Shown here: in pieces, positions 5,304-30,776 of the stretch
Position numbering within the stretch: the stretch's first letter is position 1
How the letters are laid out: every line of letters begins with the position of its first letter
NCBI GenBank assembly: GCA_023334545.1
Contig: JAADVB010000183.1
Coordinates: 1-38,649 of the forward strand
DNA from: Salisapilia sapeloensis CBS 127946
Lineage: Eukaryota; Protista; Oomycota
Direction of reading: 5' to 3'
DNA: 38,649 nt
Position numbers and translations under genes: made by a program
Notes under the pieces: generated by a model
Databases searched by the model: none
Seen by the model: the letters and a program-made list of their open reading frames with translations, nothing else
Told to the model about the DNA's origin: nothing

Positions 5304-5581
5304 GACGCGACCGTATCGTCCAAAACACAAGGTCTTGTAGACTCCTGTGAAAGACATGTATAGGTCGAATCGAAATATAATCCATCATTTACTTCTTTCC
5401 ACACGAGATACCTCGTGCGCCATGTATTGCTTCCTGCCGTACGAATCCTCTTCCTTTAAGGCAATGCAGGAATGTCCTAGCTAAAGACAAGACGTGTGCG
5501 TTTGAGAGTGCGAGTCAAGTGTCCAATGTGATTTGTATTTGTCTTCTACAGTCCCGTTACGTTCCTATAGAAATGCCGAGT

Positions 5582-8500
5582 TTACTCGAGATGAATGGCG
5601 CTCTTGACGATGCGTTCCTGCTCAATCTGGTGGACGGCAGAGTATCCGGTCGCAGGAGCCGCAGCCGACGGTCGGCCAATGTACTTGGCGCGACGGTCAT
5701 CTCCGTTGATCTGACTGAATGCCGTCTCCATGCGCGGGTTCACGTACTCCCAGAAGCCCATGTTGTGCGGCTCCTCCTGCACCCACGTGACCTCGGCATT
5801 CGGGTACAAGGCTCCTTGTTCCGCGACCTTGTCGAACGGGAACGGCGCGAGCTGCTCCACACGGACGATGGCGACGTCCTTGATACCCTTCTCCTCTCTC
5901 TCCTGTGCCAGCTCGTAGTAGATCTTACCAGAGCAGAAGACAACACGCTTCACGTCGTTCGGGGACGCAATATCATCCGGTCGCGTCTCCGGGATGAGGC
6001 GCTGGAACCGCGTGCCTTCCGCCATGTCCTCCATCTTGGACGACGCTTGACGCAGACGCAAGAGGTGCTTGGGCTGGACGGAGATCAGCGGCTTTCGGAA
6101 GTCACGGTGCACCTGTCGACGCAAGACGTGGAAGAACTGTGCCGGTGTGGAACAGTACACCACCTGCCAGTTCGCGTGCTGGATCTGCATACGATCCTCT
6201 TCGTCCATGACAGGCACAACGTCCGGCTCGTCGTCCGTCATCTGGAGGAACCTCTCCACCCGGCACGACGAATGATCTGCACCAGCGCCTTCATATCCAT
6301 GCGGAAGCATCATAACGAGTCCCGACTGACGCATCCACTTGTCCTCTCCGCTGCTAATGAACTCATCGATCATGACCTGCGCACCGTCGGCAAAGTCGCC
6401 GAACTGAGCTTCCCACATCACGAGCGCATTCGGGTTCTCGAGTGAGTACCCGAGTTCAAAGCCGAGAACGCCGTACTCGGACAAATGCGAGTTCGACGCG
6501 ACGAACTCAGCCTGTGTGTCCGGGATCGTCTGCCCAACCTCCGGTCGCTCCAACGGAGCAGACGGTGACGCACGTTTGGCCAAGTGGTTCAACGGGATGA
6601 ACTCTTCGTTCGTCGTCTGGTCATGCAGCACCGAGTGGCGGTGGCTGAACGTACCTCGCTCGACGTCCTGTCCACTGATACGGACGTGGTTGCCTTCCAG
6701 AAGGAGGGAACCCCACGCCAGCGCCTCGGCTGTACCCCAGTCGATGCCTTCTCCCGTCTCGATCGTATCCTTCTTGGCCTTTAGGATGCGCTTGAGCTGA
6801 CGGTTGAGGTCGAATCCGTCGGGTAGAGACACCATCTTGTTGCCAACGTGCTGGAGGACGTCCATGTTGACTCCAGTCTCGCGGATACGACTCTGCTGGT
6901 TCGGACTCTTGAACGACTCCCATCGATGCGCCAACCAGTCGCTCTTCTTTGTTGGCTCCCAGTCCTTGCTCTCTTCAAACGTGCGTTGGAAGAAGTTCCA
7001 CACCTTGTCGACGATACCATCACATTCTTCCTCCTTGGCAACCTTGTTGTCCACCAAGTGCTTCTTGTATGTATCCAAGACAGATGGCATGTCGCTGATC
7101 TTCTGGTACATGAGTGGCTGCGTGAAGAGCGGGTTATCGATTTCATTGTGGCCGAAACGACGGTAGCACGTAAGGTTCACGATCACGTCCTGACGCCACT
7201 GCTGTCTCCACTCGGCCGCGAACTCAAACACCTTGACGACAGCCTCTGGGTCGTCGCCATTGACATGCAAGATCGGAACGTCCAGTGCTTTGCCCAAGTC
7301 GGAGCAGTACTCGGACGATCGGCCGTCGCGCATGTCGGTTGTGAAACCCACTTGGTTGTTCACGACGACGTGGACTGTTCCGCCCGTGCCGTAGTTGTCC
7401 AGACCAGCCAAGTTCATCGTCTCGTAGACGACGCCTTGTCCGGCGAATGCAGCGTCACCGTGAAGCAGGAGAGGCATCACCTTCTTCTCGGCATCGTCGT
7501 CGTTGCCGAGGTAGAACTGCTTCGCCTTGGCTTTACCGACGACAACAGGGTCCACGGCTTCCAAGTGCGACGGATTCGCCACAAGTGACAGGTGGATGTT
7601 ACGTCCGTCCGGGTATGTTCGGTCGTATGACGTACCGAGATGGTACTTGACGTCTCCGGCGTTGGACCAATCGGCCATGCTCGAGTCTTTGTATTGCTCC
7701 AAGTCAATGTGCGTGCCTTGGAACTCCTTAAAGATCTGTTGGATGGGCTTCCGGATGACGTTCGAGAGGACGTTAAGACGACCTCGGTGGGCCATACCGA
7801 TGACAATGTGCTCGACGCCGAGCTCCGTGGCTCGATCGACCATGAACTTGAGGCCAGGGATGAGAGACTCGGCACCGTCGAGACCGAAACGCTTGGTCGT
7901 GTTGTACTTGTTGTTCAAGAAACGCTCAAAGACGACGGAGAACGAGAGACGTTCCATGAGGTGCATTTGCTTCTTGTGCGATTCCTCCGCTTGGACCAAA
8001 TGCTCGAGCTTGGCACGAATCCAGTTACACTTGTCACGGTCGAGAATGTGCATATACTGGACGCCAATCGTGTTGCAGTACGTCTCCTTGAGACGGTTGA
8101 CAATGTCGCCGAGCGTCATGTCGTTCTTACCGTCCGCGAGCTCTTCCAAGAAGCCAGACACGCCAGACGAACTGCAGAACAGAGTGAGATACAGACGAGG
8201 ATAAATATTGCGTAGTTGACGTACAAGTTCTTCGGGATATCAATGACACGGTCCAAGTCGGCGTCCGTGAAGCCGTACATCTTAATGTCGAGCTCCGGCG
8301 GGTCCTTGCGCTGGGTCAAGCCCAACGGATCGAGCTTGGCAGCTTCGTGACCACGCACTTGGTACGCACGGATCAAGTAACTGAGTCCCAGGGCATCGTT
8401 CTGCTCCGTGGACATGGCGGAGGAGGCACCAGCCGCACGAGCGACGGGCGTGACGCCGCTCATGATGGTCGGAGGCGGGATGAAGGCCTCGCCTGGCACG

Positions 8501-8797
8501 GCTCCCTTTTCCACTTGTCGAAAGTAGACATCCCACGACTTGTGGACACTGGTGGAGAGCATTAGCGGGAGAGCACGATGATATCTAACGCAATAATTTG
8601 TACCTGGACGGATCTTGTTTCCAGGAAGAGTACATTTCCTCCACGTAGGCGTTGTTCGTGCCGGAGAGGAAGGTCTCACTGGCATGCGGTGTGGATGCGT
8701 ACCATCGCTGGAAGGGTGTGTTGGCTGGACGGACGGACGCGCGCTGGACGCTGCGTCTCGCGAGCTTGGAAGCTGCTCCAAGCCACTGCGGCGCCAT
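5582..8797 (-). CDS. OGDH: 2-oxoglutarate dehydrogenase E1 component, mitochondrial precursor (about 1035 aa; exons 8797-8604, 8548-8225, 8171-5582)
   Basis: Arg/Ser-rich presequence, then FLSGTNNAYVEEMY, SVHKSWDVYF, LIRAYQVRGH, KRFGLDGAE, MAHRGRLNVL, GDVKYHLG, NPSHLE, the ThDP motif GDAAFAGQG...NNQ, YRRFGHNE, RISGQDVERGTFSHRH and WVQEEP. Two GT-AG introns join all pieces in frame (3108 nt). Confidence 0.97.
8172..8224 (-). other. Spliceosomal intron 2 of OGDH (53 nt)
   Basis: GTACGT...TGCAG; splicing gives IPKN-F-SSGVSGFLEEL in frame. Confidence 0.9.
8549..8603 (-). other. Spliceosomal intron 1 of OGDH (55 nt)
   Basis: GTACAA...ACCAG; splicing gives WKQDPS-S-VHKSW in frame. Confidence 0.9.
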
Positions 8798-10991
8798 GGT
8801 CTAGAAAAAAGGCTTGGGTGTTGCGCGTAGCAAAGGGAAAATGGCACAGGAGATTGTGAGCCGTCGATACGACGATGGTCTCTTGGCACCTGACAAAGTC
8901 CCTCGAGATCGAATGTGCGGTTGGGAGCGCATTTAACGGTATTCGTTTCCGAGAAACGAATAAATGGAATGGGTTTGGGACGATGGTTCTGTTCAACAGG
9001 TAGAGGTAGAGAGATGAAAGAGTGGTATGGTTTGAAGAGAAGGACGGAGGGAGTTGGATGGTATGGTGCTTTGGAGTTGGAAATGTGGTTAAAAAAGACA
9101 TGGGCGTGTTGAGTAGGTTGAACGAAGATGATCATGGCTAAATGTCGACTAGTGATTGCTCGCGTTAGTGATTAGACCTGAGTGATTTGTGGATGCAGAA
9201 AACAGTATGTGACAGACCAGGTTTGTATGAGCAAAGCCCTATGAAGCTGTAGGTAGATGTGGATTCCGTATCTAAATTGTGTCTTATGCATTCTGTTGCT
9301 GGATACGAAAGATATCACTTAACGCGGTTTTGCATGAACTTGTACTTGTATTTTGCTAAGAGATGAAAACCTGCTTGCAAAGCAGAACGGAGGAAGGAGG
9401 CACAGAATGTAGTGGATTTATGGAGAAGTATAGAAGTGAACGATTTCAGTTGACGCATATCCGCTGAACGCTATGAGCGGGATCGGAGTCTACAATGAGG
9501 ATCACGAGATCCAAGATACTTTAATATCATGCGTCGAGAATTTATAGTCTACTTATCCTGTGCGGAGAGATAGCGCAGTATCAAAATGATTGAATGAAAA
9601 GCTGCATGTGACTTTTACATTCATCAAAATCAGAGTCGCTTGTTAGTTCAAAACGTTCCATTAGATGCTTCTGGTGTCCAGACACCAAAAGCCTTCCCAA
9701 TTGTAGATGAATCGAACACATTGTAAAAAGACATGCAGGTACGTCGTACTTCAAAGCTCGGCTACTGGGCATTGCACCAACGAGCACGATTTTTTACTTG
9801 CTTGGGACTCAACTTTACCTTTAAACATCATACATACGTTTCCAAAAACGTGTACAATTGCGACGAAATCATTTTGTCTGCTCTATGTAGGTCCTCGTTG
9901 TAGGCATTGTCTTATTTTGGCATTTTCGGCATGCGTCCAGAGATTAAAAACAAAATCATCATAGGAAGCATAAAGCGGTTATTTGTCGGTTATCCAAGTG
10001 TCCATTAGGCAAGGAAAGCGTCATGAAGCCGCTTGGAAGAGAGATACTTGCAATGATCTATATTTACCATATTAAAACCATGTTGTACCAACTTATGCAT
10101 CAATCTGCGTTCGCTGAAACTCGTCTTTGGGCAACTTGCTTTTGCATATCAAGACAGTCACTCCATCTCAGTACTAACAAATCACATCTTTCAAGACTAG
10201 TGTTATTAAATCAGGTGCCTTTGGGTTTCAATGATAGGTATGAGCAAGAGCTGAGCTTCTTCTTTCTAGGCATAGCAACGCGAGTTCCACAGAAGCTCGC
10301 CTGTGTGCTTTGAACGTTTCGAAGACCATCAGGTTCTTTGCTGGACGTATTCAGCTTGGTTGGAAAGACTATTATCAGTGTTCTCCATTATAAAGCTATA
10401 CCAGTAAAGCCAAATCCCATTGCTGTTCTCCACTTTGTCCATTCGATTGACAGAAAGCCGACTACGAAAACTGAAGTGGATAGAGAGTTACCGAAATAAA
10501 ACGAATCTCAATTTCTACATATATGAGGCAGCTTTGCAAGTAAAAATTAAATGAAAGAAGCGAAAGAAGAGTGCAAGTACAGGATGTCAGTACGTAGGAA
10601 TATAATAGTTTGTGAGCATCTACTAACAGGACATCTACGGGTATAGTTCATATATAGACAGAGAGGCAAAGATAGATAAGATGAGACAAGAGAAGAGTTT
10701 CCATTGGATTTACTCAAACTTTAGCTTTCCATACTACGGTCGTTGTCCATGGACACGCCAATCCACGCTTCATCTTGGGTCTTCAAAACAGCTTTTGCTC
10801 TGAAATAGCTTTCAAACGTACTCTTGTATCTACACAACACTCTTCTCGAGGCTAACTCACAAGTAGCTGTGCATGAGCAGGCTAGATATGTACCGACACA
10901 AGCAGCACTTGGTAACTTTAGAATACAACTTTAACAAGATTATATTTTATTGCAGTGTTTATAATTATGATTTCTGTTGAAACTTTCGTAA

Positions 10992-11949: not shown

Positions 11950-14900
11950 ATGAACCCGTACAACTTGCAGCGACTTCGAGAAGAGGCTGACGGCGCGTCC
12001 AACACTCCTGCATCCGCGTACGTGATGTCCACCGACAATAACTTTACCAGCATCTCCAACACGGCTACCTCCGACCAATCCTTCAACAACAACGCACAGC
12101 CAGCTCCTCGCATGAGTGAAGCGGAGAAGGCCACGTACGAACTCACTAAGGGCGATGAGACCGAAGCCTTGGGACGCATCACCGTCCACGGGTACATGCA
12201 CAAGCAAGGTACTCGTGTGATCAAAGGGCCTGTGGCCAAGTCATGGCGAAAACGGTACTTTGCGTTAGAGGGAAAGAAGATCTACTACTTCCACGACTTT
12301 GTCGATTGTCGAAAGTACTTTAATAGTCGAAACGGAGAGCTCGTCATCGGTGCCATCGACCTACGAGATGCCTTCAAGCTAGAGCAGAGTGAACGACTCG
12401 ATCTTCCGTCCAGAGGTATCGAAATCCACACGAGGCATCGAAAGTGGCTGCTCTGTCCCGAGACCGACTCGGACTTTACGATGTGGTTCGACGCGCTCGA
12501 GTTCACCATCATGGCCGACGGCTCCGGAAACGTCGTGAAGCGAGAGCTGCCCAACGTTCGAGAGTACGAGATGAAAGGCCGACTTAGCTACCGCTTCTGG
12601 TACGTCATCTTCGTCCTGACGTCACTACTCGAACTCGCGGCTTTGACGCTGTGGTTCCCCCTCGGCATCGAGCCGTGTGATATGAAGTACAAGGAAGAGA
12701 CGTGTGAATTCATCGGGCAGACGTACGTAGACAAGATCCACTGCGGTGACAAGCCGTTCAACGGTTTGTGGAACCCACCCGAGTGGTACCACTGGTCCGC
12801 CGGCATCAGCGATGTCCAGTGTTTCCGAGAGCCTCTCATCGGTCACTGGATCTCCTTCTTCCTCTTTTATCTAGCCGAATTTATTTCCATCTCCCTCGGT
12901 TTCCTCTACTACTTGGGCATGTGGAAACCAGTACGTCGAGGCGCACAGTACCTCAAAGACTTTAAGCCTCACTTTTCTCCTGGCAAGTGGCCGACGGTCG
13001 ACATCCTCTTGTGCCACTACTCGGAACCTGCGGAAGACACGATCGCGACGTTGGAGTGCATTATGAACCTAGACTACCCGGCGCACTTGTACCACGTCTG
13101 GATCTGTGACGACGGATACTGTAAAGCCAAGTGGTCTGACGGTGCCGTCGTGCCAGAAGTCGGCGTCAACCATGGCGTCATTGAGAACGCTGGAGACGTC
13201 CGACATGAAGTTGCGCAGTTCATGTACGAACGCGTGTGTGAGAACGATGAGCTCGAGGTAGACGAGTGGCGCAAGCAGCACACGACCGTCCGCATGCCGA
13301 CGGATGAGCACCCTCGCGTCGTCCCTCGCGCGGATTGTGCCGTCGGATCCGTCCGAGACGACTATAGCTACATGGGCTTCCCTAAAGTCACGTTCGTCGG
13401 TCGGATCAAGCCTCCCGTCCACCACTCCAAGGCTGGTAACATCAACAACGTCCTGTACAACGAAGGCGCCGGCGGCCGATACGCCGTCATCCTGGATAAC
13501 GACATGAAGCCCCACGCCATGTTCCTCCAAGCCACACTCCCCTTCTTCTTCGCCGCGCCAGAGAGTGCGCGCATGGGCAAGTGCGTCGCGCCGGGGTGCA
13601 CGGACATTGCCAAGATCAGTTGCGCCATGTGTCTCAACGCCGGCGTGCCGGAGAAGCACATCTCCTTTTGCTCAAAAGACTGTTACAACGCTGCGCAACA
13701 CCAGGTCTCGTCTCTCCATCGCCGACAGACGCAGAACACCATGACCGAGCGATGGGCGTGTGCGACCTGCGGCAGCAAGATCAACCAGAAGAAAGGCATC
13801 TGTCGCAAGTGCAACGCGCCTGTGAGTCGTCGCGACTCGGCCGTCGAGTTCGCCGAAGTCGGGCAGGATGACTACTCGGACCACGTGTCGATGAATCAAG
13901 TCGGGTACGTCCAGACGCCGCAGTACTTTGAGGATTGTCTCCAGCTGCGTCTAGGAGATCCATGCGGACATCGTAACGCGACCTTCTTCGACTCTGCTCA
14001 GACAGGTATGGACGGATACGAGTGCGCTTCCTTCGCCGGCACGAACGCCATCTTCCGTCGCGATGCGCTGGACTCGGTCTGTGGCATCCAGTATGGCAGT
14101 TTGACAGAAGACGCGTTCACGGGAAAGATGATGATTGACAAGGGATGGAAGGGTCTGTACTTCCGAAAGGATCTCGAGGGCGAGGAAGGAGATCGGATTC
14201 GACTCGCAGAAGGAGCCGTCCCAGAGACTGTCGCCGCAGCACTTGCACAGCGTAAGCGATGGGCAAAAGGTAACTTCCAGATCTACCTCCGGAAGAAGCA
14301 TTCGCTCGTGGACCCAGAGTGGAGTCCACCCAAAGTGGAGCTTCCGCCGAAACGCAAGGTCAACAAGTTCATGCGATGGGTCTTCTTTATGAACTTGACA
14401 GTCTACCCCATCGGATCCTTCCCTGCCCTCTTCTTCTTCTATTGCACAGCCTACTTCTTGTACACGGGCGACGCTCCTATCTACACGAGTGGTCTGCGTC
14501 TACTCATGGCGCTCGTGCCCAAGATCATCGCCCAGAGTGTCTTGTCTGCGCTTTCCAATCGGACAGTCGAGAATGATGACGTCCTACGTAGTCAGCAGAC
14601 CTGGTTCTCGTACGCTTTCGTCCACGTCCTCGCTGTCTTTGAGACCTTCCAGTGGAAAATCACGGGCAAGGAGGCGTCGTGGGCCAACACGGGTGCGCTC
14701 TCTGGAAATAGCATCATGGAACTGCCCAACCTGATCGTCTTCCTCGCCATGGTCTTTGGCATGCTTTGGGCAGTCGTACGCTTCTTCGTCGGCTACAACA
14801 TCGCCGAGCGGACGCACAACACGCCTCTGCTCTTCGCCAGTCTCTTCCTCGGCGGCTTTGTCGTCGCGCAGCTCGGTCCGATGGTCCGCATGAGCCTCCA

Positions 14901-15036
14901 GACGTACTTTGGCTGGAGCCACAAGAGTCTGACGGACCAAGGCAACATTGTCGGCTCCTTCTCGCTCGCCTTCTTCCTCGTCGTCCTCTGCTTCTGGGTG
15001 TACGTGGAAACACCAAACCATGAAATCTTTGGTTAA
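11950..15036 (+). CDS. CesA: Cellulose synthase with N-terminal PH domain (oomycete CesA1/CesA2 type, GT2; 1028 aa)
   Basis: PH domain (HGYMHKQG...SWRKRYFAL...WFDALE, about 12180-12520), 2 N-terminal TMs, DDG, HSKAGN, DND, QTPQ, FAGTN, TED and QRKRW (14248-14262), then a multi-TM C-terminus. Which paralog it is cannot be settled without a tree. Confidence 0.95.
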   Translation: MNPYNLQRLREEADGASNTPASAYVMSTDNNFTSISNTATSDQSFNNNAQPAPRMSEAEKATYELTKGDETEALGRITVHGYMHKQGTRVIKGPVAKSWRKRYFALEGKKIYYFHDFVDCRKYFNSRNGELVIGAIDLRDAFKLEQSERLDLPSRGIEIHTRHRKWLLCPETDSDFTMWFDALEFTIMADGSGNVVKRELPNVREYEMKGRLSYRFWYVIFVLTSLLELAALTLWFPLGIEPCDMKYKEETCEFIGQTYVDKIHCGDKPFNGLWNPPEWYHWSAGISDVQCFREPLIGHWISFFLFYLAEFISISLGFLYYLGMWKPVRRGAQYLKDFKPHFSPGKWPTVDILLCHYSEPAEDTIATLECIMNLDYPAHLYHVWICDDGYCKAKWSDGAVVPEVGVNHGVIENAGDVRHEVAQFMYERVCENDELEVDEWRKQHTTVRMPTDEHPRVVPRADCAVGSVRDDYSYMGFPKVTFVGRIKPPVHHSKAGNINNVLYNEGAGGRYAVILDNDMKPHAMFLQATLPFFFAAPESARMGKCVAPGCTDIAKISCAMCLNAGVPEKHISFCSKDCYNAAQHQVSSLHRRQTQNTMTERWACATCGSKINQKKGICRKCNAPVSRRDSAVEFAEVGQDDYSDHVSMNQVGYVQTPQYFEDCLQLRLGDPCGHRNATFFDSAQTGMDGYECASFAGTNAIFRRDALDSVCGIQYGSLTEDAFTGKMMIDKGWKGLYFRKDLEGEEGDRIRLAEGAVPETVAAALAQRKRWAKGNFQIYLRKKHSLVDPEWSPPKVELPPKRKVNKFMRWVFFMNLTVYPIGSFPALFFFYCTAYFLYTGDAPIYTSGLRLLMALVPKIIAQSVLSALSNRTVENDDVLRSQQTWFSYAFVHVLAVFETFQWKITGKEASWANTGALSGNSIMELPNLIVFLAMVFGMLWAVVRFFVGYNIAERTHNTPLLFASLFLGGFVVAQLGPMVRMSLQTYFGWSHKSLTDQGNIVGSFSLAFFLVVLCFWVYVETPNHEIFG

Positions 15037-15105: not shown

Positions 15106-17619
15106 CTACTCTTCCAATGGTACAATATGCTCTTCATCCACTAGCAACGTGTAGCTATAGTACTGTAGGTACTGGGAGAAGAACGCTCCTTCCAACGCGA
15201 TGACGACTTTCATCGAGTGGTGACGGAAGGAAAAGGAGAATTCGCTACCAGCGTCCCACAACACATTCCCGACGCCTCGACTCTGATACAGCACTTCACC
15301 GTCTAAGAGGACGCTGCGGAATCCGCCGCGTAGTCCGTGCTGGAGCTCGACGCAGTGCTTTTCGTCCTCCATCTCGAGCACCCACCAGATCTGCTTCCAG
15401 GGGAACGTGAACAACAAGGCACTGGCTGGATGCTTCATCTCTTCTAAAGTACACTCCCACACCTCCTTGCCATCGTCCAAGCTTAGTCTACCTCGTCGAG
15501 ACATGGGGACGCTGTCTTTGCCTTGAGACGACGTCCCGAGGACGTGTCGGTCTTGGAACACTTGCATCTGCAGCAACGTTTCGTCCAGCAATAGCTCAGG
15601 TCCTCCGTCGTCCGGGACCTTGACCCACGTCCGATTCGGGTACCCGAGACTCACCCAGTCCGGCGGATTCGCATACAAGTTGAACAAACGTTCCGAGATG
15701 CGCATGAGACTCGGACCTTCGTCCTCATACCCTCTCTTCTTGGGTGCTTCCGGTCCGTCCAATTGGATCCATCCTTTATCCGACGACACCAACCGGATGA
15801 ACGTCTCCTTCGACCTTGGCGCTGTGTACTGCACATCTGCCTTGAGGATCGCTCCTTCCGGCAGCTGCCGCAAGACCTGTGATCGACTTTCAGGAGACAA
15901 GAGCACGTCTTTGCTTTCACATAAAATACGGTAATAAAAGGTTCCACTAACGCGTTCCGAATGGTCATCGACTAGATCCACCACTTGCTCTCCAGTCGGT
16001 GTCATATCAAAGATCCAGCCACCATTGTGCGATACCTTCAAGTACGTGATACGACTGCCTGGTGGTTTATATTGTAAAGAGCTTTCGACGATACTTCCTG
16101 CCGCGAAAGGAGTGATGCCAGGCAGACGACTGCACTCAAAGTCCGGCGCGGATCGAGGGTACGTCGGCATGAGGACGCGATAGAACTTGGCGTCGTCCTT
16201 TGTCATGGCAAAGCCTTGCACTTGCTCCAGGACACGACTGTAGGGCGGAGACAACTGTTGTTCGCACACCCATCCAGCGTCATGACGTAGCTTAACGAAG
16301 CTCAGCTCCGTCGCTGGCGCTGGAGGAGGCAGGAACTCAGTTGGGATGGTCGGAAGAGACGTATCGGACGGCACGAAGCGTTCACTACACTCGATCAAGG
16401 TATCCTTATATCGTTTTCTCTTTGATTCTAGGCTAGATGGCAGCGCTGGAGTCGGCAGCACGACCACGTCTTCTAGGACCTGATAGAAGAGGCGTTCCAC
16501 CAGTCGTTCTTGCGGCCGAGCAATAGGTTCCAATACCACTTGTCCGTCCATTGTGGTCTCAAAGACCCATCCACCATGACAGGACGCAACGTGCTTCCCA
16601 TTCATACCGTGTGCACAGCCACAATTCGCGTCTTTTTCTTTACAAACACGAACGTAAGTGATCTTACTACCAGGCGGCGTTAAGCGTTGCGAAGCTTCGA
16701 CGATCGAGTGGAGCTTGAAGCCTTTGCCAGCTCGTTGAGCCATGATATGAGGGGCGACACGGACGCCGACGGGAATGCGGACGATGTAGAAGAACTGGCC
16801 GTGCTCGATGTGAGGCTGCGACTTGAGCTTTTCCAAGACACGAATGCCCGAGTTGAGACAATCAAAGAGCCATCCGTCTTCATACGCGAGCTTACAAAAG
16901 GTGACGCCAGAGTCAGGGCATCGATAGAGGCGGTTGCACTCGACGATCTCCTCAGCGTTTTTAAAGACGTAACGAGAGATAACAGGTGAAAGCAAGTCTG
17001 GCTGCTTGCGTAATTCGATCGGAACGAGAATACGAAAGTGGAATTTGCCAGACTCATCGTATGGCTGCGCATCAGACGGTAGACGCTCTAGAAAGTAGGT
17101 CGATGGAGATGACGGAGGGTGGACGGACGCGAGGAGATAAGCATTATCTACGTGAGAGAGACTGACGAACCAAGCGGAGACTATGTGACCATTGTATGGG
17201 TATTCACATTGGAAGCAAGCGTCGGACTCGACCACTTCTTCCGCCATCTTCTTCAGGTTGAAGCCTACGCAGGAAGGATGTGAGCGGCATGGATACATTT
17301 ATAATCGGACGTGTCTACTTTGAGCATTTGTTTCGTCTTTCCGCTGCGGCGCTTTGCCTGGATCATTGCGACTCAGCTCTTCAATACGAGCGAGACCAGT
17401 GGACCCATTTGGACTTGTCGGATTATCGCTTGTGGTGGTGGCAGTGCCGGTCGAGCCAAAGTCGACAGTATATAAATGGCTATCTTCCAGCACACGATAG
17501 AAAGCATGATCTTCATGCACGCGACGATGCTCATTAAGGTCTTCATCGGCAGCAGGGGATAGGACTTTGCAGAAGGACACGCCATCACGAGAGCTACTCG
17601 CACTCAACCTCCGCGTCAT
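15106..17619 (-). CDS. Uncharacterised protein with 5-6 tandem SH3b-like repeats and a C-terminal FAIM-like domain (about 819 aa; exons 17619-17319, 17264-15106)
   Basis: A 730-codon ORF plus an upstream same-frame ORF, joined by a 54-nt GT-AG intron that removes the single TAA. Repeats have the form FY(R)V-...P...(I/V)VE...PGS..T(Y/F)-..L....GW(I/V/L)F(D/E). The C-terminus W-V-L-E-M-EDEKHCVELQHGLRGGFRSVLLDG...YSYTLLVD matches the FAIM beta-sandwich pattern. The coding status is strong; the exon-1 start and domain names are by eye. Confidence 0.8.
17265..17318 (-). other. Predicted 54-nt intron containing an in-frame TAA
   Basis: GTAGAC...GCTCAC(branch-like)...CCTGCGTAG. It keeps frame (NAQ-S-FNLKKMAEE) and its length matches the other introns in the window. 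Confidence 0.75.
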
Positions 17620-18528
17620 GCTGATCAAAAATAAAACTTTGTTGTATAAAACGCCTCTTGTATGGAAAAGATAGACCGTATACAAAGTACAAGTGAATTT
17701 AGATAAGTGCTTCGTCAGTTTCATGGCGAAAGAAATTATGCAAGCTAATTATGATTGATAGAAGCTCGGTCGTAGTTGGCATTAGGTAGAGTGAGCATGT
17801 AGAAACTTGGAATGCTATGGATGTATGTGTTGTGACTTGTTGATACACTCTCATGTGCCTTGGAGAATTTATCATTACCCCACATTGACTGCCATAAAGA
17901 TCGGATGTCCTACGCAAAGTAGTAGCCTCGAGTTTTGAATAAAGAGTACTTAATACTCAAATGAGATGCGTGATACAGGTTGAGTTGGTTATATAAAATG
18001 CTATAGCTGGTAGTAAATACTGCGTTCTTGTAATACTCAAAGCATCCGCTCTGTTAATGGCCTTCGAGAGCTCACATCGGCATTGCATAAAGAATCAAAA
18101 ATTTATAATAGTTGTTAGCAAAGTCATATCTTTCATTTCTCGTAGGTATGCCTATCAGTCCATAGAATAGAAGAGGATAAAAGATTGGATATGGAGGTCA
18201 CCGAGTAATAATGAAGTGACAGAAGCGTGCAACACGTTTCTTGATGATCGTTTAAAGGAAATTGGACAGGACACGTAGACTGAGAAGATATTGTAATAAA
18301 GAGGACGAGATGCTCTTAAAGACGCTTTCCCTAGTAAGCACTCGCCCACGTAAAAACAAAAAGAATGCTACGTGAACCTTGGTAATTGATGAATTCAGTT
18401 AATGGTATTGCATTGCAACCTTTAGGCAGGTTCTCATTTTGATCTCGTTCGTCAATTTTAAAACTATGGTGCGATGCTCCATATGCAACGACGAATATTG
18501 CGTTTAATAATATATGCTCCAGCCTCTT

Positions 18529-18957
18529 TTAAAGAGTTTCGCCAGGCTCTTCGGGCGTCGCATTTGTCACGGGCGGTACCCAGTATTCGACGGACTGAAG
18601 AAACTCTTCATCCGATAGAACGTCGACAGGATGTAGTGGCTCGACAGGGGCTGCGCATGGAAGCGGAAGTGGATATGGAGCTAAGTCAGTCGCTGCTGGG
18701 AGGTATGACTGCGCAACTTTTTCCAGTCGGTCGTTTTCCTTCTTCAATCTTTCGACTTCCGTTTGGAGGTCACGGAGGCGCTTAAGCTGGCGCTGACGCG
18801 ATCTCGCAGCAGATTGACGGTTACGCTCCCGGCGTACTTCGACAGGGTCATCTGTTGACTTCTTGAAGGCAGAGCTCGGGCTGCACGGTGATACCGGATG
18901 TGAGACCGAACGAGGTGACGAGTCGCTGGCATTACTGGTCGAGGAGGCGCAAGACAT
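18529..18957 (-). CDS. Small bZIP transcription factor (142 aa, canonical Asn type)
   Basis: Basic region RRERNRQSAARSRQRQ (N-x7-R), then heptad leucines L-QTEVER-L-KKENDR-L. Ser-rich N-terminus and Pro/acidic C-terminus. Confidence 0.88.
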   Translation of the reverse strand: MSCASSTSNASDSSPRSVSHPVSPCSPSSAFKKSTDDPVEVRRERNRQSAARSRQRQLKRLRDLQTEVERLKKENDRLEKVAQSYLPAATDLAPYPLPLPCAAPVEPLHPVDVLSDEEFLQSVEYWVPPVTNATPEEPGETL

Positions 18958-21675: not shown

Positions 21676-22840
21676 TTATAATGTCGTACGCGGGCCTGTG
21701 GCAGGCACGTCCTCCGACTTGGTTTCGTCCTGAATGTCCATATCCTGCATGACTTTCGAGATACTCTCTTCCTGCTCTCCACTTTCCTTGGCTTGTTTCT
21801 GCTGAATGCGCTCAATCAGTTCCGGAAGGTACTCGTCCTCATACTGCTTCGCAGCCTTCTCCACTGCCTTGTACAAGTCATCCATGCCTTCTCCCGTTGC
21901 AGCAGACACGCCGACAGAAGTCAGGTTGGTGTAAAACTCTTCCAGGACGAGACTGAGCGATCGTGAGAGAGAACCCATGTAGCTCTCGTCCTGCACTTGG
22001 TCCAGAGCTGCTTGGAATGCCTCAAAGTCTTCCATCCACTCCTGAGCAAAGCCATGGTGGAGGACATCGGTCTTGTTAAACACAATCACAAAGGGAAGAC
22101 GGAGTTTATATAGAATACTGCAGGCGTAGAGCATATTCGACATGAATGTCGTCGGGTTCGCCGTTCGAGGAGTGTCCACGACGTAGACGATGACCGTGGG
22201 GAAAGCAGTCGCGAGAGACTCGGTGATAATGGAGCCCGATGCGGACCACGTAAACGCTTCGATCTGACCTGGTGTGTCTACTACGGCATAGCTATACATG
22301 CGATTAGCTTTCGACGATTCGTACATGGAGATAAGTGAGCTCACTCCAAGTCTTCATGGCGTTTAGAGAGAAGGTTGATGACTTGGTCGAAGCGTGTGGC
22401 GAAGAGATTGAGCGACGTCATGATGGCACCATTCGGACCGAGAGCATATTCCTTCATAACTTGCTTGTAGTCCACCGTGTCTCGAATGTCGACGTTGGCA
22501 GTGTATCCTGTTTTCCGTACGGCCGGGTCCAAATTCACAACGTAGTTGCGAATGCCATTATCCACACCATAGGCTGCAATCCGCTATACATAAAAGTTTA
22601 GTTTCTAGTCGTATACGCTTGCATCAATTGTGTAGATGCAGTTCATGTAAGATCAAAGCATCAAGACTAGGATGAATGGCAATGATTTTCTGTCAATAGT
22701 ACCTGCATGAGTGTCGTTTTTCCACTACCAGCCATACCGATCACGAGCATCGTAACAGGCTTGGAGAATAGTTGCGGCATGTTACCATCTTTTGCAGCAG
22801 CGGCACGAATGCCTTCGGAAGTAGAAGTATCGGTCGCCAT
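21676..22840 (-). CDS. GPN1: GPN-loop GTPase 1 (XAB1/Npa3; 330 aa; exons 22840-22703, 22583-22345, 22291-21676)
   Basis: P-loop [62 protein letters not shown] and an acidic tail. Two GT-AG introns keep frame (993 nt). Confidence 0.95.
22292..22344 (-). other. GPN1 intron 2 (53 nt)
   Basis: GTGAGC...GCTAAT...GTATAG; gives [12 protein letters not shown]. Confidence 0.9.
22584..22702 (-). other. GPN1 intron 1 (119 nt)
   Basis: GTACTA...CTAAAC...GTATAG, phase 0; gives KTTLMQ-RIAAY. Confidence 0.88.
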
Positions 22841-24812
22841 TCGCGTTTCGAGTATTGGTGCCGAGGTTCCGGAATTGTGGCATTCTGTGTTTGCATGATC
22901 AATCTAGAGGGACCTTTTCAAACTGATATTATCCGTAAATATGATTTATATTGTATAAGAAAGGACATCTGGTAACTTGGACAGGACTCGAGACACCATT
23001 CAAAGTTTGATTTTGCGTTCAAATTTCGCAATCGAAACTTTTCTCTTCCACTGATGAGGCTTCTTCGGAGTAGTTAGAGCTACGGAATAGACCTGTGGTG
23101 AGCAGAACTTGACTTTAAAGTCCTACATGTACGTGAGCTTTGAAAGCGCTCGAATATGACTTAAGGCCGCGTTCGCGCAGAATATCAATTCAGCGTTATT
23201 GGGGATTCACATTTTATCATTCTATCTATGCTCTTCGAATCGGGCAGTTCCGCGTTCGATGAGAATAGCCGATATTGCTTTGCTATTTGCTATTGGAAAC
23301 CTAACGTAGCACTTCAATATAGGTTTCCGACCAAACTAGGAGTACAAAAGCAAGCGATCGTTCGTCTTGGATGCAATTAGGAGGAAACGGTCCCCGAGAA
23401 GACTTTCAGTCACGCCTGGTGCTCAACATATGCAAATTTGAAAAAGCGCGCGAAGCAGTCGCTCAACTTGGTGAGCTCTTCGATTTACTTGTGCTAGTTA
23501 GCTCTTCGCTATTATTTCGGAGCAGACATCGTACAGTGGTAGATGAAATAATTAAAGGATACTTGTGACTCGTACTGTATTCTGTCCCACTGAAACGGCG
23601 AAAAGCTCACTAACGCAAGTAAATCGGATGCAACTTCAACCCGAATGATTTCTGACGATAAAACACGATACGCTCGACACTAGTCCCCGCCAAAGACTTG
23701 TGCATTGATTCTTATTACAGTGTTTGTGTCTTTGTTCACATGATGCCTTTAATGCTTCACATCATCCCCTATTATCTGCTTAATGAACGCGACCTAAACT
23801 TCTACGATGACTAGAGTCGAACCAAATAGATGGAGTCTAATACTGCCATCTAGTAGCCAGCGGAATGCTTAAAGGATTATGTGGAAAGCTGGACCACATC
23901 CATTCGACGAACATCATTCCATTTGTTCCCTTCCTGTCGTGATTGAACATGAACGGTAGATTGTGTGATACCTTTAAAACGCTGGATGAATAGTCACTAC
24001 CGCTGCCACTCTCAACAATGTCATTGCCTCCAATATTGCTTAGATGTCCACTTCAAATTAAGCTTTTGACTTAACCTTCGATCCACTCAAGTGTCCCTTT
24101 AATCTATTCGATATCATGGACAATGACTGCAAAATTGCTTTTCAAGGTAAGCATTATATATCAAGTCGTACATTTTATAACTGTGATAAATCAAGCACCG
24201 CCCCACATAATTCCATCGGCTCGTCTGACTAAAGCAAGTTCACTATGATACTTCATGCTCTTCATCTCCGTCTATTAACGTTTCCACATTCGTCTCTTGC
24301 AGCTATCCCACGTAAGTACCGACTATCCATGCCTCCTCTTTCGTACCGACATTTCATCATCAGTTGAGCACCATACGCGGAGAGGATACCTGCTATGCAC
24401 AAGTATAGACACACTTCTTCAAGAGGGAAATATTTTACTTGATCCATAATTGCTCGTGCAGACGGTATCGTGCAGGTGAAGTTATTGGCGCTTCTATGCT
24501 TGACGAAGAGGCAATGCATGGTAGAGAACAACTGGTTTTATTTATAAGGAATGGTAGCAGTCAAAGCCACGTGTATATGGACTACTGTTCACATGGACAC
24601 GTAGGTATGAAGGATTAGAAAAGGTTATTGGTCAAGTCACTTTCTTTGAAGTACAAAACCGTGTATCTTATGATCCCTTAGCGCTCGCAGTGATAGCAAA
24701 CCACTTTACAGATTTTCTCCATCAAGCTTGACGCGTACCAGCACGGTACTGACATTTCTGTGATTTCGTCACTCTGCCATCTTACTCAGTGTCCTAGTCC
24801 TTGAGTAGCGAC

Positions 24813-26942
24813 ATGGTAGCTCACCAACCGTCAGAGCAGACTGGAACTAGCGAGAACGCTCCTGACACATACATTATCGCCAAGTCCGGTGCAGAAGATA
24901 GCTTCAAGTCGTTACCACCAAATGCTGCTTTCGACCAAGGACCAGAAATGACTGCTAGTACGCAGACCTTCAAGCAATCTGATGCCGAGCCACGTATCAC
25001 CGAAGGAAATACGGATAGTACCGCTGAAACGACTTATAATAATGTTCAAGATGAAGCACATCAGGATACAGACACAGCAAAGTTTACCTTCACTGACCGT
25101 CCAACTTCTACTCCGTCGAAGTCACCGACAGAGACTTCGAATGCAGAGACACCGGCTGCAAATTCTCCTCCTCTAGACGCGGTAAGTAGTCAAGAAAACT
25201 CGAAAGAAGGACAAGCTTCGCCAGTACATGGAAATGACGGATCGAGTGAGGCGCACAGTGACAGCAGCAACCGAGAGAACTCACTTACTAATCGAAGTGA
25301 TCATTTATCTTTCACTTCTACCTCAGGTGGTCCATCGGACGCGAATGCCGGGGTTGTTGCTCCCGACTTGGACGTCATTGAAGACTCTGAGACAGGATAT
25401 ACGTACACGAATGACAATATCTCAGCTCTCTACCCAAGCATTGACATCTTGAGAGATGGTTCACAAGAAACAATGGAGATTACCGACCGTGAGGGTGTGT
25501 CAACGTCCAGTGTCGTTGGCATTTCTGTCGGCTGTGCGGTCGGCATGGTTATCGTAGCAGCCTTGTACGTCTTTCGAAAACGTTTTCATCGAACGATTAA
25601 TGATGATGCAGTGGTGGGCACTGATGAAGAACTTGGTACTGATATGAACCATCGACAACTATCTTCCAGCAAGCGCATTACGTTTGAGGCGACGAATGAA
25701 TTTACAAAAGTCCTATCAGCGCACCGTATTAGTATGCCATTCCATCGCGCGAAGGTAAACGGAAATGATGCTCATCTCTCTGACTACCGCGAAACAGCTC
25801 ATTCTATTGATCTTTCAAGTGCATATGGATCTCATACGTCTAGTGACGACGTTGAAAAGAATGTATTATCTGGAAGCAAAGACAGGCATACTATCGACTT
25901 AAACGATAAACGCTGGGGAAACAGTTTTGTTGATGCACTTCTGGCATCCTACCACTCTTCCGAGGTTTTGCAGGTCGATACTATTTCTTCTATTCACTCA
26001 TCAAGTGAAGGAGAGCGCGTATCATCTAGTGCTTTATTAGACAAGCATGAAATCTTGGATGCACGTATTGCGTTTGAGGAAGTTGCCATGAACAAGTTCA
26101 CTATGAAAGGAAATGCAACGGATGTGTATTGTGGAAACTATCGTGGACAGGAAGTGGCAATTAAAAAGCTTTCGCTCGAGTCTTCAATGAGATTGAGTAC
26201 GCTCAACAAATTCTTGGCACAAGTCGAAGTTGCTACGTGCGTCTTTCATGATCGCATTGTACCCTTTGTCGGTATCGCATGGACGTCGTTCAGTGATTTG
26301 CGTGTCGTACATGAATACATGCAGGGCGGTGATCTGAAAAGTGTGTTAAACGCTAACAAGGATGGAGTTGCGAGGAAGGAAGGATTCAACTTTCAAGAAA
26401 TGCACATTGCAGTGCAGATCCTCGAGGCAATGGTTTTCCTCCATTCCTTTGATCCCCCGATTGTGCATGGCCGGTTAAAGACACAAAAGGTTTTACTTGA
26501 CGAAAGAATGGACGCCAGACTTAATGCCTTTGGTAGTACCCAGGATGTAATGGATTTCGACACACTTGCTCAGAGGTTCGAAACGGATTGGATTTGGATC
26601 GCGCCAGAGATTCTAAGTGGCAGAAAGCAGGATACGAGGTCCGATATGTATGCTTTTGGCATATTATTGAGTCAGTTGGAGACACATGAGGAGCCGTATC
26701 AAAATTTGACGAACAGCATCCACCGACATGGTATCGAGAAATGTTCAGATCTAGAACTATTGAACTTTATATCCTCAGGAACCTTTAAGGTGACATTTTC
26801 ACCAGACGAAGACGATGACTTAACATTGCTCGGCATTCAGTGTGTCTCGCAAAACCCAGACGAAAGACCAACTGCACAAGAAGCATTACAAGTTTTCAAA
26901 ACAGCGATGGAAGAATCGCATGGACATACTAATCGAAAATGA
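24813..26942 (+). CDS. Single-pass receptor-like TKL-family pseudokinase (709 aa from the first in-frame ATG; 5' end uncertain)
   Basis: S/T/E-rich ectodomain, TM (about 25512-25574) followed by RKR, then a kinase fold: VAIKKL, IVPFVGIAWT, EYMQGGDL, HSFDPPIVHGRLK, NAFG, WIAPE, DMYAFG. The HRD and DFG aspartates are absent. Confidence 0.85.
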   Translation: MVAHQPSEQTGTSENAPDTYIIAKSGAEDSFKSLPPNAAFDQGPEMTASTQTFKQSDAEPRITEGNTDSTAETTYNNVQDEAHQDTDTAKFTFTDRPTSTPSKSPTETSNAETPAANSPPLDAVSSQENSKEGQASPVHGNDGSSEAHSDSSNRENSLTNRSDHLSFTSTSGGPSDANAGVVAPDLDVIEDSETGYTYTNDNISALYPSIDILRDGSQETMEITDREGVSTSSVVGISVGCAVGMVIVAALYVFRKRFHRTINDDAVVGTDEELGTDMNHRQLSSSKRITFEATNEFTKVLSAHRISMPFHRAKVNGNDAHLSDYRETAHSIDLSSAYGSHTSSDDVEKNVLSGSKDRHTIDLNDKRWGNSFVDALLASYHSSEVLQVDTISSIHSSSEGERVSSSALLDKHEILDARIAFEEVAMNKFTMKGNATDVYCGNYRGQEVAIKKLSLESSMRLSTLNKFLAQVEVATCVFHDRIVPFVGIAWTSFSDLRVVHEYMQGGDLKSVLNANKDGVARKEGFNFQEMHIAVQILEAMVFLHSFDPPIVHGRLKTQKVLLDERMDARLNAFGSTQDVMDFDTLAQRFETDWIWIAPEILSGRKQDTRSDMYAFGILLSQLETHEEPYQNLTNSIHRHGIEKCSDLELLNFISSGTFKVTFSPDEDDDLTLLGIQCVSQNPDERPTAQEALQVFKTAMEESHGHTNRK

Positions 26943-28306: not shown

Positions 28307-30776
28307 TCAATCCTTAGTGATCGGAGGGGACAAATTCGTCATCTCCTTGCTCTGCTTGTTCTTCTTGTATGATCGGAAGGCTTGCTTCTTCGCCGGTCCG
28401 TCAATGTAAGCCACGAGGTCGTCGCTCATAAAGTAGTTGCCAGATCCAGCATTTACCTTGGAATCTTCACAGAAGCACATGAGGATGGTATCAATCGCTG
28501 TTTCGTATACATCAAGGAAGAACGAAGCAGTCGCGTATCCGAGCAGTCCCGTTAACTATGACACCATTAATATTCGCAAGGATAGACTCATATTATAGGT
28601 AGACGTACGATCATGGGGAAGATAGGACTCGAAATGTTTTCCAGGTCATCCATGAAGAAACTTGGCAGGTGCTTAGGAGGATACTTGATGAGCACGAACA
28701 TGAAGAACATGGACGTTCCAGCGATCCCAATCTTGCCAAGGATCAAAAGGAACTGGCTGATAACACTGACCGTCGCAACGCGACCAATGTTCGACAGCAT
28801 TAAAGTGAACGAGTCTTTCATGGCTGGACAGAAGCTATGACCTTTCATTGCGATCATGATGTAAGCGCGTTTGTTCAGGAACTTGAGGCACTTTTCAAAG
28901 CACCAAAGTACGCATTTCAGGCACGTCATGACAACTTTAACAATCTTATTGCCTTCCTGAGCTGACTTCATCTGGTGATCAATGTACTCAACGATGATAC
29001 GGAGCATCTGGACTATCGCGATGATCAAACTTCCAAACGCTGCCGACCCACAATGACTGGTAATAGTACGTCGAACTGACCGCAACAGTGGGAAGCGTTG
29101 AAGGTTGTTTTTGTCGCGTGTCCAGTAGTATTCGCAGAATGTACCGGAGACAATCAAGTATGCTACTGCCTGGATAAATTGCGTCATCCACAGCAATCCA
29201 AAGAGATGGTAACCTAGCATATAATTCACGACGCGTTGATCTGAGACTTCTACTTTGATTGCAGGCGTACCAACAAGTTTATTTGCCGTATCTTTCACGT
29301 CCTGTAGTGTCAGTGAAGCAGACGTCGCAATGAAAGCCGCGGCAATTAGCCACAAGCAAACAAAGATGGCCGTTACAACAGTAGGAAGCAAAGGGAAAAA
29401 GGTAATCGATGCCATCTTATTCACTGCCTTTGACGATTCTCGGACGATGCCAACAGCAAGCTGAATGCGTCGACACATGCAGACGACAAGGAGCACCAGT
29501 ACGAACTCAACAGCAAGCATGACGTAGGCTGCAATCGCCCAATAGCGGATTTCGTCTTGAGCGGCAACATAGCCTGCGCTGTTGATAATCGATGTCGATT
29601 CAGAGATAATCGTAGAGGACGTCGTGTCGGATACACCCATCTTATCCATTGCCTCAGCCAAGTGGTCACTCGTAATGAGGTCACCTTGGTACGCACAGAA
29701 AAGTGTTAGTACAAGCTGGACGGTGCACACCCCAATGACGGTAAGCCACACGAAGAATCCGGCTAAAAAGCGAAGTAGAAGCAACCACCCGAAGCCAAGC
29801 AGCATGGCAATTAGTCCACCACACAACAAGATTGGTAATGCTGCTTTCTCAATGTCACCCATCCACCTTGCTACCTTGTACCACGAACTCCTTAAAAGCT
29901 CTAGCACAGGTGCAGAATGAGCCGTCGAGACCTGGGTTTCTGTTCGAGCAGTCTCCATGTTCGAGCAACTAGGTCGAAGCTCGGAAATCATTTCTGGGCA
30001 AGACATGTCTCCACACTCACGCATCGGATTGGCCTTGAGGTCATTGCCACACGTCAGCGATGGCTTGTCTCCGTCATTGTAAGCCTTTTCTTCTTCATCT
30101 GTGCATGCATCGATACAACGGGCCATTTGCCTGATGTGAACGGTTTGTAGTTCCAGACACCGATATAGCACTTCTGTTGTGTTGACAAAAAGTTGCCATG
30201 GCGAACCTGCCGACTCGTCTTCCAATTCTTTACCCAGTGACGTATCCTCTTCATTCACAGGATCAGGATTTGCATCGTAGTCTGTGTAAGCGTGAACATA
30301 GGTAGCCGTGGAGGTACTATCAGCCATTGGGCACTTTTCAACACAAACGCCATACAACTTGCTTAACGAGACATCTGAAGCACTTTTGATGTTCATGTCC
30401 ACAAGATCTTGTGAAAGACGTGGATATATGAGGTAAGGATATCCCGTAAAGTTATAAGCAGGCACATTGCCAACTTCTTCCGTTTGCATATAGCCACAGG
30501 TCCGACCCATCCAGTCCGTTCCATGAACAAGTCTCTTGGGGTTTCCATGCACATACCCAACGACACTGATTGCAACGAGACCCAGCAAGAAGGCAATAAA
30601 AAAGATGAGACATATCAAGTCCGTACAACCGCGCTTGTTCGGCTTGAAAGAGGAGTTTCCATTCGCATCAGACGGGCCCTACGACGGATATTTTTATTAG
30701 ATAGATCAATAAAGCATTCTCCTCGTGGTACTTGTACCTCAGGACCTTCTGCTGGCGTGCTGCACTTGGCTCCCAT
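28307..30776 (-). CDS. Choline transporter-like protein (CTL/SLC44 family; about 785 aa; exons 30776-30738, 30678-28609, 28555-28307)
   Basis: KRGCTDLICLIFF, GNPKRLVHGTDWMGRTCG, RRIQLAVGI, HCGSAAFGSLIIAIVQ, CLKCVLWCFEKCLKFLNKRAYIMIAMKGHSFC, VYETAIDTILMCFCED; about 10 TMs. Both introns are in phase. Confidence 0.92.
28556..28608 (-). other. CTL intron 2 (53 nt)
   Basis: GTACGT...TCATAG, phase 0; gives SPIFPMI-LTGLLGY. Confidence 0.88.
30679..30737 (-). other. CTL intron 1 (59 nt)
   Basis: GTACAA...TCTAAT...TCGTAG, phase 0; gives MGAKCSTPAEGPE-GPSDANG. Confidence 0.8.

Follow-up and report, generated by a model that had tools for sequence, protein, structure and literature searches.

A conserved oomycete protein joining an array of probable SH3b-like repeats to a C-terminal FAIM-type domain

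We analyzed a 38,649-nucleotide contig of the oomycete Salisapilia sapeloensis CBS 127946 (JAADVB010000183.1, positions 1 to 38,649 of the forward strand; assembly GCA_023334545.1), hereafter called the window, and report on a gene of its minus strand at 15106-17619. Our overall explanation, to which we assign a probability of about 0.6, is that this is a real oomycete gene whose product combines an array of probable bacterial-type SH3 (SH3b)-like units, a conserved middle region and a C-terminal beta-sandwich of the FAIM type, and that it presumably works as an adaptor. The architecture is undescribed in the literature, though the family has already been deposited publicly oomycete-wide. Both the architecture and its undescribed repeat family are made of recognizable folds. 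The main interest lies in a new protist domain family and in what appears to be an older FAIM fold than published.

RESULTS

A two-exon gene conserved across the oomycetes

The window is eukaryotic in makeup, its coding islands having a G+C content of 52-58% and its spacers one of 40-46%, and gene content and best matches mark it as oomycete DNA. Two minus-strand open reading frames (ORFs) in the same frame, 17299-17724 and 15106-17298 (730 amino acids [aa]), are separated by a single TAA (17299-17301), which falls within an intron that we read from the sequence. The gene model is as follows.

17319..17619 (-), exon 1, with the ATG at 17619; 100 codons and the first base of a split Ser codon; it also holds the N-terminal strand motif of a degenerate repeat unit (unit 0), and its N-terminus aligns with those of the orthologues
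17265..17318 (-), phase-1 GT..AG intron of 54 nt with the in-frame TAA
15106..17264 (-), exon 2, 718 codons in frame from 17262; stop codon at 15106-15108

Searches and models used the exons separately, as 17320-17619 (-) for exon 1 and 15109-17262 (-) for exon 2. Exon 2 has 41 database homologues, with E values down to 1e-284, and aligns with oomycete proteins of 800-950 aa at 42-57% identity across 99-100% of its length; its best matches are 53-57% identical in Phytophthora, Plasmopara and Pythium and 42-43% identical in Albugo. The position and phase of the intron are the same in four annotated orthologues, those of P. infestans, Pythium oligandrum, Pythium insidiosum and Plasmopara halstedii, each of which has a single phase-1 GT-AG intron (61-108 nt) inside the codon four residues before a KM.EEVV motif. 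Because both the gene and its intron position are conserved, a pseudogene or an artefact was ruled out, and the comparisons indicate that 15106-17619 is one genuine, expressed-looking two-exon oomycete gene. Its product of ~819 aa is acidic (pI about 5.6) and soluble. No signal peptide or transmembrane segment was found in it (maximum 19-residue hydropathy, 1.28), and neither the window protein nor 31 orthologues gave a Pfam match to a catalytic family.

The architecture of repeat units plus FAIM was found in Peronosporales, Pythiales and Albuginales. It is also present in Saprolegniales, where Thraustotheca P0042 has six units plus FAIM and Aphanomyces astaci P0108 and P0111 have ankyrin repeats, units and FAIM. 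The positional orthologue in P. infestans T30-4 is PITG_17568, and a genome search revealed a single FAIM-type locus in S. sapeloensis. All family members are named "hypothetical" or "uncharacterized" in databases, and literature searches for FAIM in oomycetes, for PF06905 and for eight locus tags or accessions of the family returned nothing relevant. For oomycete biology, the gene is a single-copy, lineage-wide and strongly conserved one without an assigned function. P0023 (Hyaloperonospora brassicae) and P0031 (Peronospora belbahrii) are called "START domain-containing protein" in UniRef, probably through spurious automatic labeling: Pfam START did not match P0023 at E <= 0.1, and the modeled sandwich matches FAIM, with no helix-grip fold suggested.

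The repeat array comprises five homologous units and a degenerate one

The units are listed below with their scores against a hidden Markov model (HMM) of the unit, which was built from database proteins only, with no window sequence.

17122..17250 (-), unit 0 (degenerate), C-terminal half, with an EEVVE ... W.V.L.H motif
16822..17052 (-), U1, 75.4 bits, the hub of the hhalign matches
16519..16803 (-), U2, 97.9 bits, with a Cys/His-rich loop insertion before the GW motif
16213..16500 (-), U3, 66.1 bits, the most divergent unit, with a Pro-rich loop insertion
15967..16194 (-), U4, 79.5 bits
15754..15945 (-), U5, 47.4 bits, without the last strand

Unit profiles were cut from an alignment of 32 species (A1) and compared pairwise by hhalign. 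U1 matched U4, U2, U5 and U3 with probabilities of 99%, 98%, 97% and 90%, respectively; further pairs were U2-U4 (99%), U4-U5 (93%) and U3-U4 (73%), and all ten pairs spanned 17-99%. In a control, the units matched two non-repeat regions with at most 1.5% probability. The five window units scored 47-98 bits with the unit HMM, against a maximum of 1.4 bits for 300 shuffles of the protein. These results indicate that the five units are homologous to one another. Self-BLAST of exon 2 yielded no off-diagonal match; the repeats are therefore old and diverged. The units are beta-rich and 65-95 aa long, and in a pooled alignment of the five units from several species (A5) one Pro and a GW pair are invariant, within the consensus G.FFYRVL.PV..R..P...I.E.S..YTPP.S..TYVKL....GW.F.....G..VLE.

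Unit 0 contains a long insertion and is also split by the intron; it was judged by its two halves and by the annotated proteins of the orthologues. Its first strand (FYRVLE...), encoded by exon 1 at 17470-17511, scored 5.1 bits with the unit HMM, and its second half, at the start of exon 2, matched U1 in the correct register with 26% hhalign probability. The counterpart in Thraustotheca P0042 is a whole unit of 32 bits. Taken together, these observations weakly support a degenerate first unit within the window, and the count given in a sequence-only reading of this DNA, five clear units preceded by a degenerate one, proved correct.

The loop insertion of U2 (16570-16645, minus strand; exon-2 residues 207-229) holds C207, C214, C216, C228 and H229, residues that 24-28 of 32 orthologues retain. 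This loop may form a small zinc-binding knuckle in the distal loop of the putative barrel.

Homology of the C-terminal domain to FAIM-NTD

The last ~95 aa of the protein are a single beta-sandwich homologous to the N-terminal domain (NTD) of FAIM.

15127..15402 (-), FAIM-NTD-type beta-sandwich domain

Pfam FAIM1 (PF06905; gathering cut-off, 22 bits) matched residues 625-711 of exon 2 over profile positions 3-79 of 172, with 21.6 bits (E 1.9e-4) in the ORF and 24.5 bits, above the cut-off, in a six-frame genome search. Among 32 family members, 25 gave a FAIM1 match at E <= 1, all under the cut-off. Positions 800-892 of the A1 profile retrieved ~25 proteins from 1.84 billion representatives (E 4.5e-7 to 9e-4), and when retrieved proteins were checked against Pfam FAIM1, 9 of 10 were positive at 28-54 bits. 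A profile of 13 retrieved proteins (A6) aligned with that of the oomycete domain (A4) with an hhalign probability of 99.4% (E 2e-21, 34% identity, 82 columns).

The sole PDB sequence matched by the domain, singly or as a profile, was human FAIM-NTD, 3mx7 (13.9 bits, E about 0.5). The same entry was the top Foldseek match of a model of the last 208 aa (E 5.7e-3; next match, 0.1), and in an unbiased structure search FAIM-NTD ranked first and the FAIM C-terminal domain (CTD) second. The predicted model of the C-terminal domain thus has the FAIM-type beta-sandwich fold. Counting against this part of our explanation, the confidence of the model is low, with a predicted local distance difference test (pLDDT) score of 48 overall and 50-70 in the sandwich, and the structural match consequently leans on the sequence evidence.

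The oomycete protein is a FAIM-domain protein and not a FAIM orthologue, because such a domain occurs in it once, as the last part of a long chain, and because human FAIM is more distant from it than microbial proteins are. FAIM1 proteins as known from human FAIM consist of an NTD (3mx7) plus a CTD (2kw1/2kd2) in ~180-200 aa, in contrast with one NTD-type domain in 819 aa here. The oomycete domain is nearer to microbial FAIM1-positive proteins than to animal FAIM, and Stramenopila, the lineage of its host, falls outside Holozoa, the group to which published work assigns the origin of FAIM (PMC7056718).

The sequence-only reading had recognized a FAIM pattern in this part of the protein, and the pattern is real. 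It had called FAIM a protein known from animals; the closest relatives of this domain, in contrast, are a Picozoa protein and microbial proteins from metagenomes, some of which come from contigs that look bacterial. As to the novel fusion of several SH3b domains with FAIM that had been proposed, the combination of a repeat array with one FAIM domain stands, but it is not unique to this genome, occurring oomycete-wide.

The repeat unit is likely a diverged SH3b barrel

We consider it likely that the unit is a very diverged barrel of the bacterial SH3_3 type. An AlphaFold2 (AF2) model of U1 (87 aa, 32-sequence alignment) was all-beta, with a pLDDT of 75. In Foldseek searches of the PDB with this model, E values were 0.25 or worse, and the highest-probability rows were endolysin SH3b cell-wall-binding domains; the VIA top rows were SH3-like barrels, among them the SH3b/GW domains of lysostaphin, AtlE and InlB. 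The language-model neighbors of U1 (Atlas features) were nearly all SH3_3 clusters, with a score of 0.92. In remote homologues, matches to Pfam SH3_3 (PF08239; gathering cut-off, 27 bits) of 19.1, 24.0 and 26.1 bits, all sub-threshold, were placed on unit instances, as follows.

P0090, SH3_3 match at 303-359, within the unit at 291-362
P0063, SH3_3 match at 695-750, within the unit at 682-751
P0079, SH3_3 match at 187-240, within the unit at 175-249

When 27 isolated units were scanned singly, SH3_3 was the sole recurrent family, with 6 of 27 units matching it at E <= 10 (best E, 0.0076). Alignment by hhalign of the unit profile with a true SH3_3 metagenome protein placed V.vR..P over LNVRvGP and GW over GW, with a pairwise E of 0.008.

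The units resemble bacterial SH3 domains (SH3_3 PF08239, the SH3b domains of lysostaphin and ALE-1, and the GW modules of InlB and AtlE) in being all-beta, ~65-80 aa long and built of a strand, then V.vR..P, a hydrophobic strand, a GW turn and a last strand; their tandem arrangement recalls autolysins and InlB. The SH3b order of motifs, with the Pro after the V.vR strand followed by hydrophobic strands and the GW turn, is present in the units. They differ in that the oomycete protein is eukaryotic and predicted to be cytosolic, not secreted or wall binding, in that the family threshold is not reached and in that their loops carry long lineage-specific insertions, including the Cys/His-rich one of U2. 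Of the bacterial-type SH3 pattern claimed from the sequence by itself, the order of motifs (R/P strand, GW) was recovered and membership in Pfam SH3_3 was not.

Several results weigh against the SH3b assignment. No unit of the window protein or of 31 orthologues gave a Pfam SH3_3 match at E <= 1, and the units stay below the 27 bits or more of formal SH3_3 membership. Unit alignments A5 and A7, used as profiles against PDB sequences, retrieved no SH3 domain, and hhalign of the unit with one SH3_3 protein gave a probability of only 4.9%. The whole-family profile (A3) had no match among PDB sequences. The matches that A5 and A7 did produce in the PDB, an rRNA methyltransferase, a designed repeat protein and Raf1, were discarded as chance. 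The unit might instead belong to a new family of small beta-barrel or beta-sheet domains of protists, unrelated to bacterial SH3 by descent, in which case the likeness of the V.vR..P strand and the GW turn would reflect convergence or a common-fold effect. We regard this as unlikely, since three independent signals, each of them weak, name SH3_3 and no other family: the language-model neighbors, the sub-threshold SH3_3 matches and the recurrence of SH3_3 among isolated units.

The middle region is a conserved segment of its own

Between the array and the FAIM-type domain lies a further conserved segment.

15427..15720 (-), conserved middle region of ~100 aa, with many invariant columns in A1

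By hhalign it is unrelated to the units and to the FAIM-like domain (at most 0.8% probability). Two candidates for it were ruled out, a second FAIM domain (hhalign, 0.1%) and a seventh unit (hhalign, at most 0.8%; unit HMM, -2.9 bits). Its model was poor, with pLDDT mostly below 50, and an Atlas search with it returned no usable match. The last ~50-65 residues of the region accompany the FAIM-like domain in P0058, P0059 and P0062.

Both modules occur in other proteins

The same genome has a second unit-bearing gene, on contig C800 at 5561-9499 (L021:3062-7000, minus strand). Its 1312-aa product consists of RabGAP-TBC, rhodanese, PDZ and fn3-like domains, one repeat unit (~residues 955-1043, 41 bits) and fn3, in that order, which is the architecture of database protein P0098. 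C2 plus four units were found in protist proteins P0061, P0063, P0090 and P0101 and in the MMETSP transcript P0118; ankyrin with units is a further combination. These uncharacterized C2- or RabGAP-TBC-bearing protist proteins share the unit family with the oomycete protein (35-69 bits with the iterated unit HMM), their units being in tandem or set among interaction domains. They lack a FAIM-type domain, whereas the oomycete protein lacks a membrane-targeting C2 and a Rab-regulating TBC domain. Judged from these sequences, the repeat unit is an undescribed domain family of its own, reused by other protist proteins.

The FAIM-like domain likewise has other partners. It is joined to guanylate kinase in P0058 (664 aa) and to an acyl-CoA-binding domain (ACBP) in P0059 (596 aa), and it forms a tandem pair in P0088, a Picozoa protein of 168 aa. 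Other FAIM-type proteins have a single N-terminal domain followed by a hydrophobic tail. One FAIM-type gene lies on a contig of bacterial layout, with DnaK, a fused YjeF_N/carbohydrate-kinase gene and a radical-SAM gene.

Two divergent neighbors, with 115 bp between them, occur on a metagenome contig of prokaryote-like character (L013:246-2052): one encodes a 400-aa SH3_3 protein (74.8 bits), and the other is of the FAIM1 type (53.9 bits). In this one instance, the two folds are paired as in the oomycete protein.

DISCUSSION

A putative multivalent adaptor

We infer that the protein is a non-enzymatic, cytosolic, multivalent adaptor. The array of barrels would let a repeated or polymeric partner bind weakly at several sites, and the FAIM-type sandwich would provide one further surface for binding or self-association. 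This proposal draws on the domain content and on the presence of the unit in C2 and RabGAP/PDZ proteins; nothing in the protein looks catalytic, secreted or membrane spanning. The partner domains found elsewhere (C2, TBC/PDZ, ankyrin, guanylate kinase, ACBP and membrane anchors) fit modules for interaction in general, close to membranes or to the trafficking machinery.

Homology of the C-terminal domain to FAIM also lends itself to another explanation, in which this domain would, like animal FAIM, be an anti-aggregation module or one that binds ubiquitinated clients, tethered by the barrel array, and the protein a proteostasis factor. This idea, put forward in the sequence-only reading, derives from what animal FAIM does. 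We find it improbable: the protein has a single NTD-type domain where FAIM combines an NTD with a CTD; human FAIM is only distantly related (13.9 bits, E 0.5), the nearer relatives being microbial proteins of unassigned function; and fusion of the domain elsewhere to guanylate kinase, ACBP or membrane anchors suggests a general binding module. Much more doubtful still is a role linked to cellulose synthase (CesA) or to the cell wall. SH3b domains do bind wall polymers in bacteria, and a CesA gene is the convergent neighbor of the gene, 69 bp away, a CesA gene with a PH domain being also found near an Albugo-like orthologue. Against such a role, the protein has neither a signal peptide nor a transmembrane segment, the adjacency to CesA is missing in P. 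infestans, Pythium and Plasmopara, and the other unit-bearing proteins are of cytosolic trafficking types.

A possibly deeper origin of the FAIM fold

FAIM has been said to have arisen in the last common holozoan ancestor, without homology to other proteins (PMC7056718). The presence of FAIM-type domains in oomycetes, in other protists and on bacterial-looking contigs contradicts this statement and indicates that such domains exist outside animals too; some of the non-animal FAIM-type proteins are evidently flagged by Pfam-based annotation already. As every oomycete has such a domain, and as it recurs in other protist architectures and on contigs that look bacterial, the fold appears to have a much deeper origin. 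Its non-animal carriers are simple, genetically tractable systems in which to ask what the ligand of the FAIM fold is.

A farther-reaching and rather speculative idea, which we would not favor at present, is that the FAIM fold did not originate with the holozoan ancestor and is an ancient binding module of bacteria, Picozoa, stramenopiles and other protists, and the oomycete protein a fused descendant of a bacterial SH3b/FAIM pair. The pairing of the FAIM fold with SH3b-type barrels could then also be old (compare the head-to-head genes of L013). If true, this would supply a non-animal system for finding what the FAIM fold binds. As for the repeat unit, its annotation would name many "hypothetical" protist proteins, and its family is probably an extreme offshoot of SH3b.

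Genomic neighborhood

The CesA gene is at 11950-15036 (+). It encodes an N-terminal PH domain and has a zf-C6H2-like insertion, of sub-threshold score, in the GT2 catalytic region; the stop codons of this gene and of the repeat/FAIM gene are the two points 69 bp apart. At the Albugo-like orthologue locus (L004), the PH-CesA gene lies ~2.7 kb downstream. CesA adjacency was absent at the P. infestans, Pythium and Plasmopara loci.

Upstream and on the same strand as the repeat/FAIM gene is a GPN-loop GTPase gene (ATP_bind_1; 21676-22344, minus strand), with a protein kinase gene nearby at 24801-26942 (+). Synteny with the GTPase and the kinase is conserved at Pythium and Plasmopara loci (L003, L005 and L006). 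In the window, a bZIP gene at 18529-18957 (-) intervenes between the GTPase gene and the repeat/FAIM gene. Some public annotations fuse the GPN-loop GTPase and the repeat/FAIM protein in one model, namely P0032 (1159 aa) and P0129 (1250 aa). The remaining neighbors are housekeeping genes.

5582-8161 (-), 2-oxoglutarate dehydrogenase E1
28588-30618 (-), choline-transporter-like protein
31029-37382 (-), Brr2-type helicase of the U5 small nuclear ribonucleoprotein (snRNP), an ORF of 2117 aa

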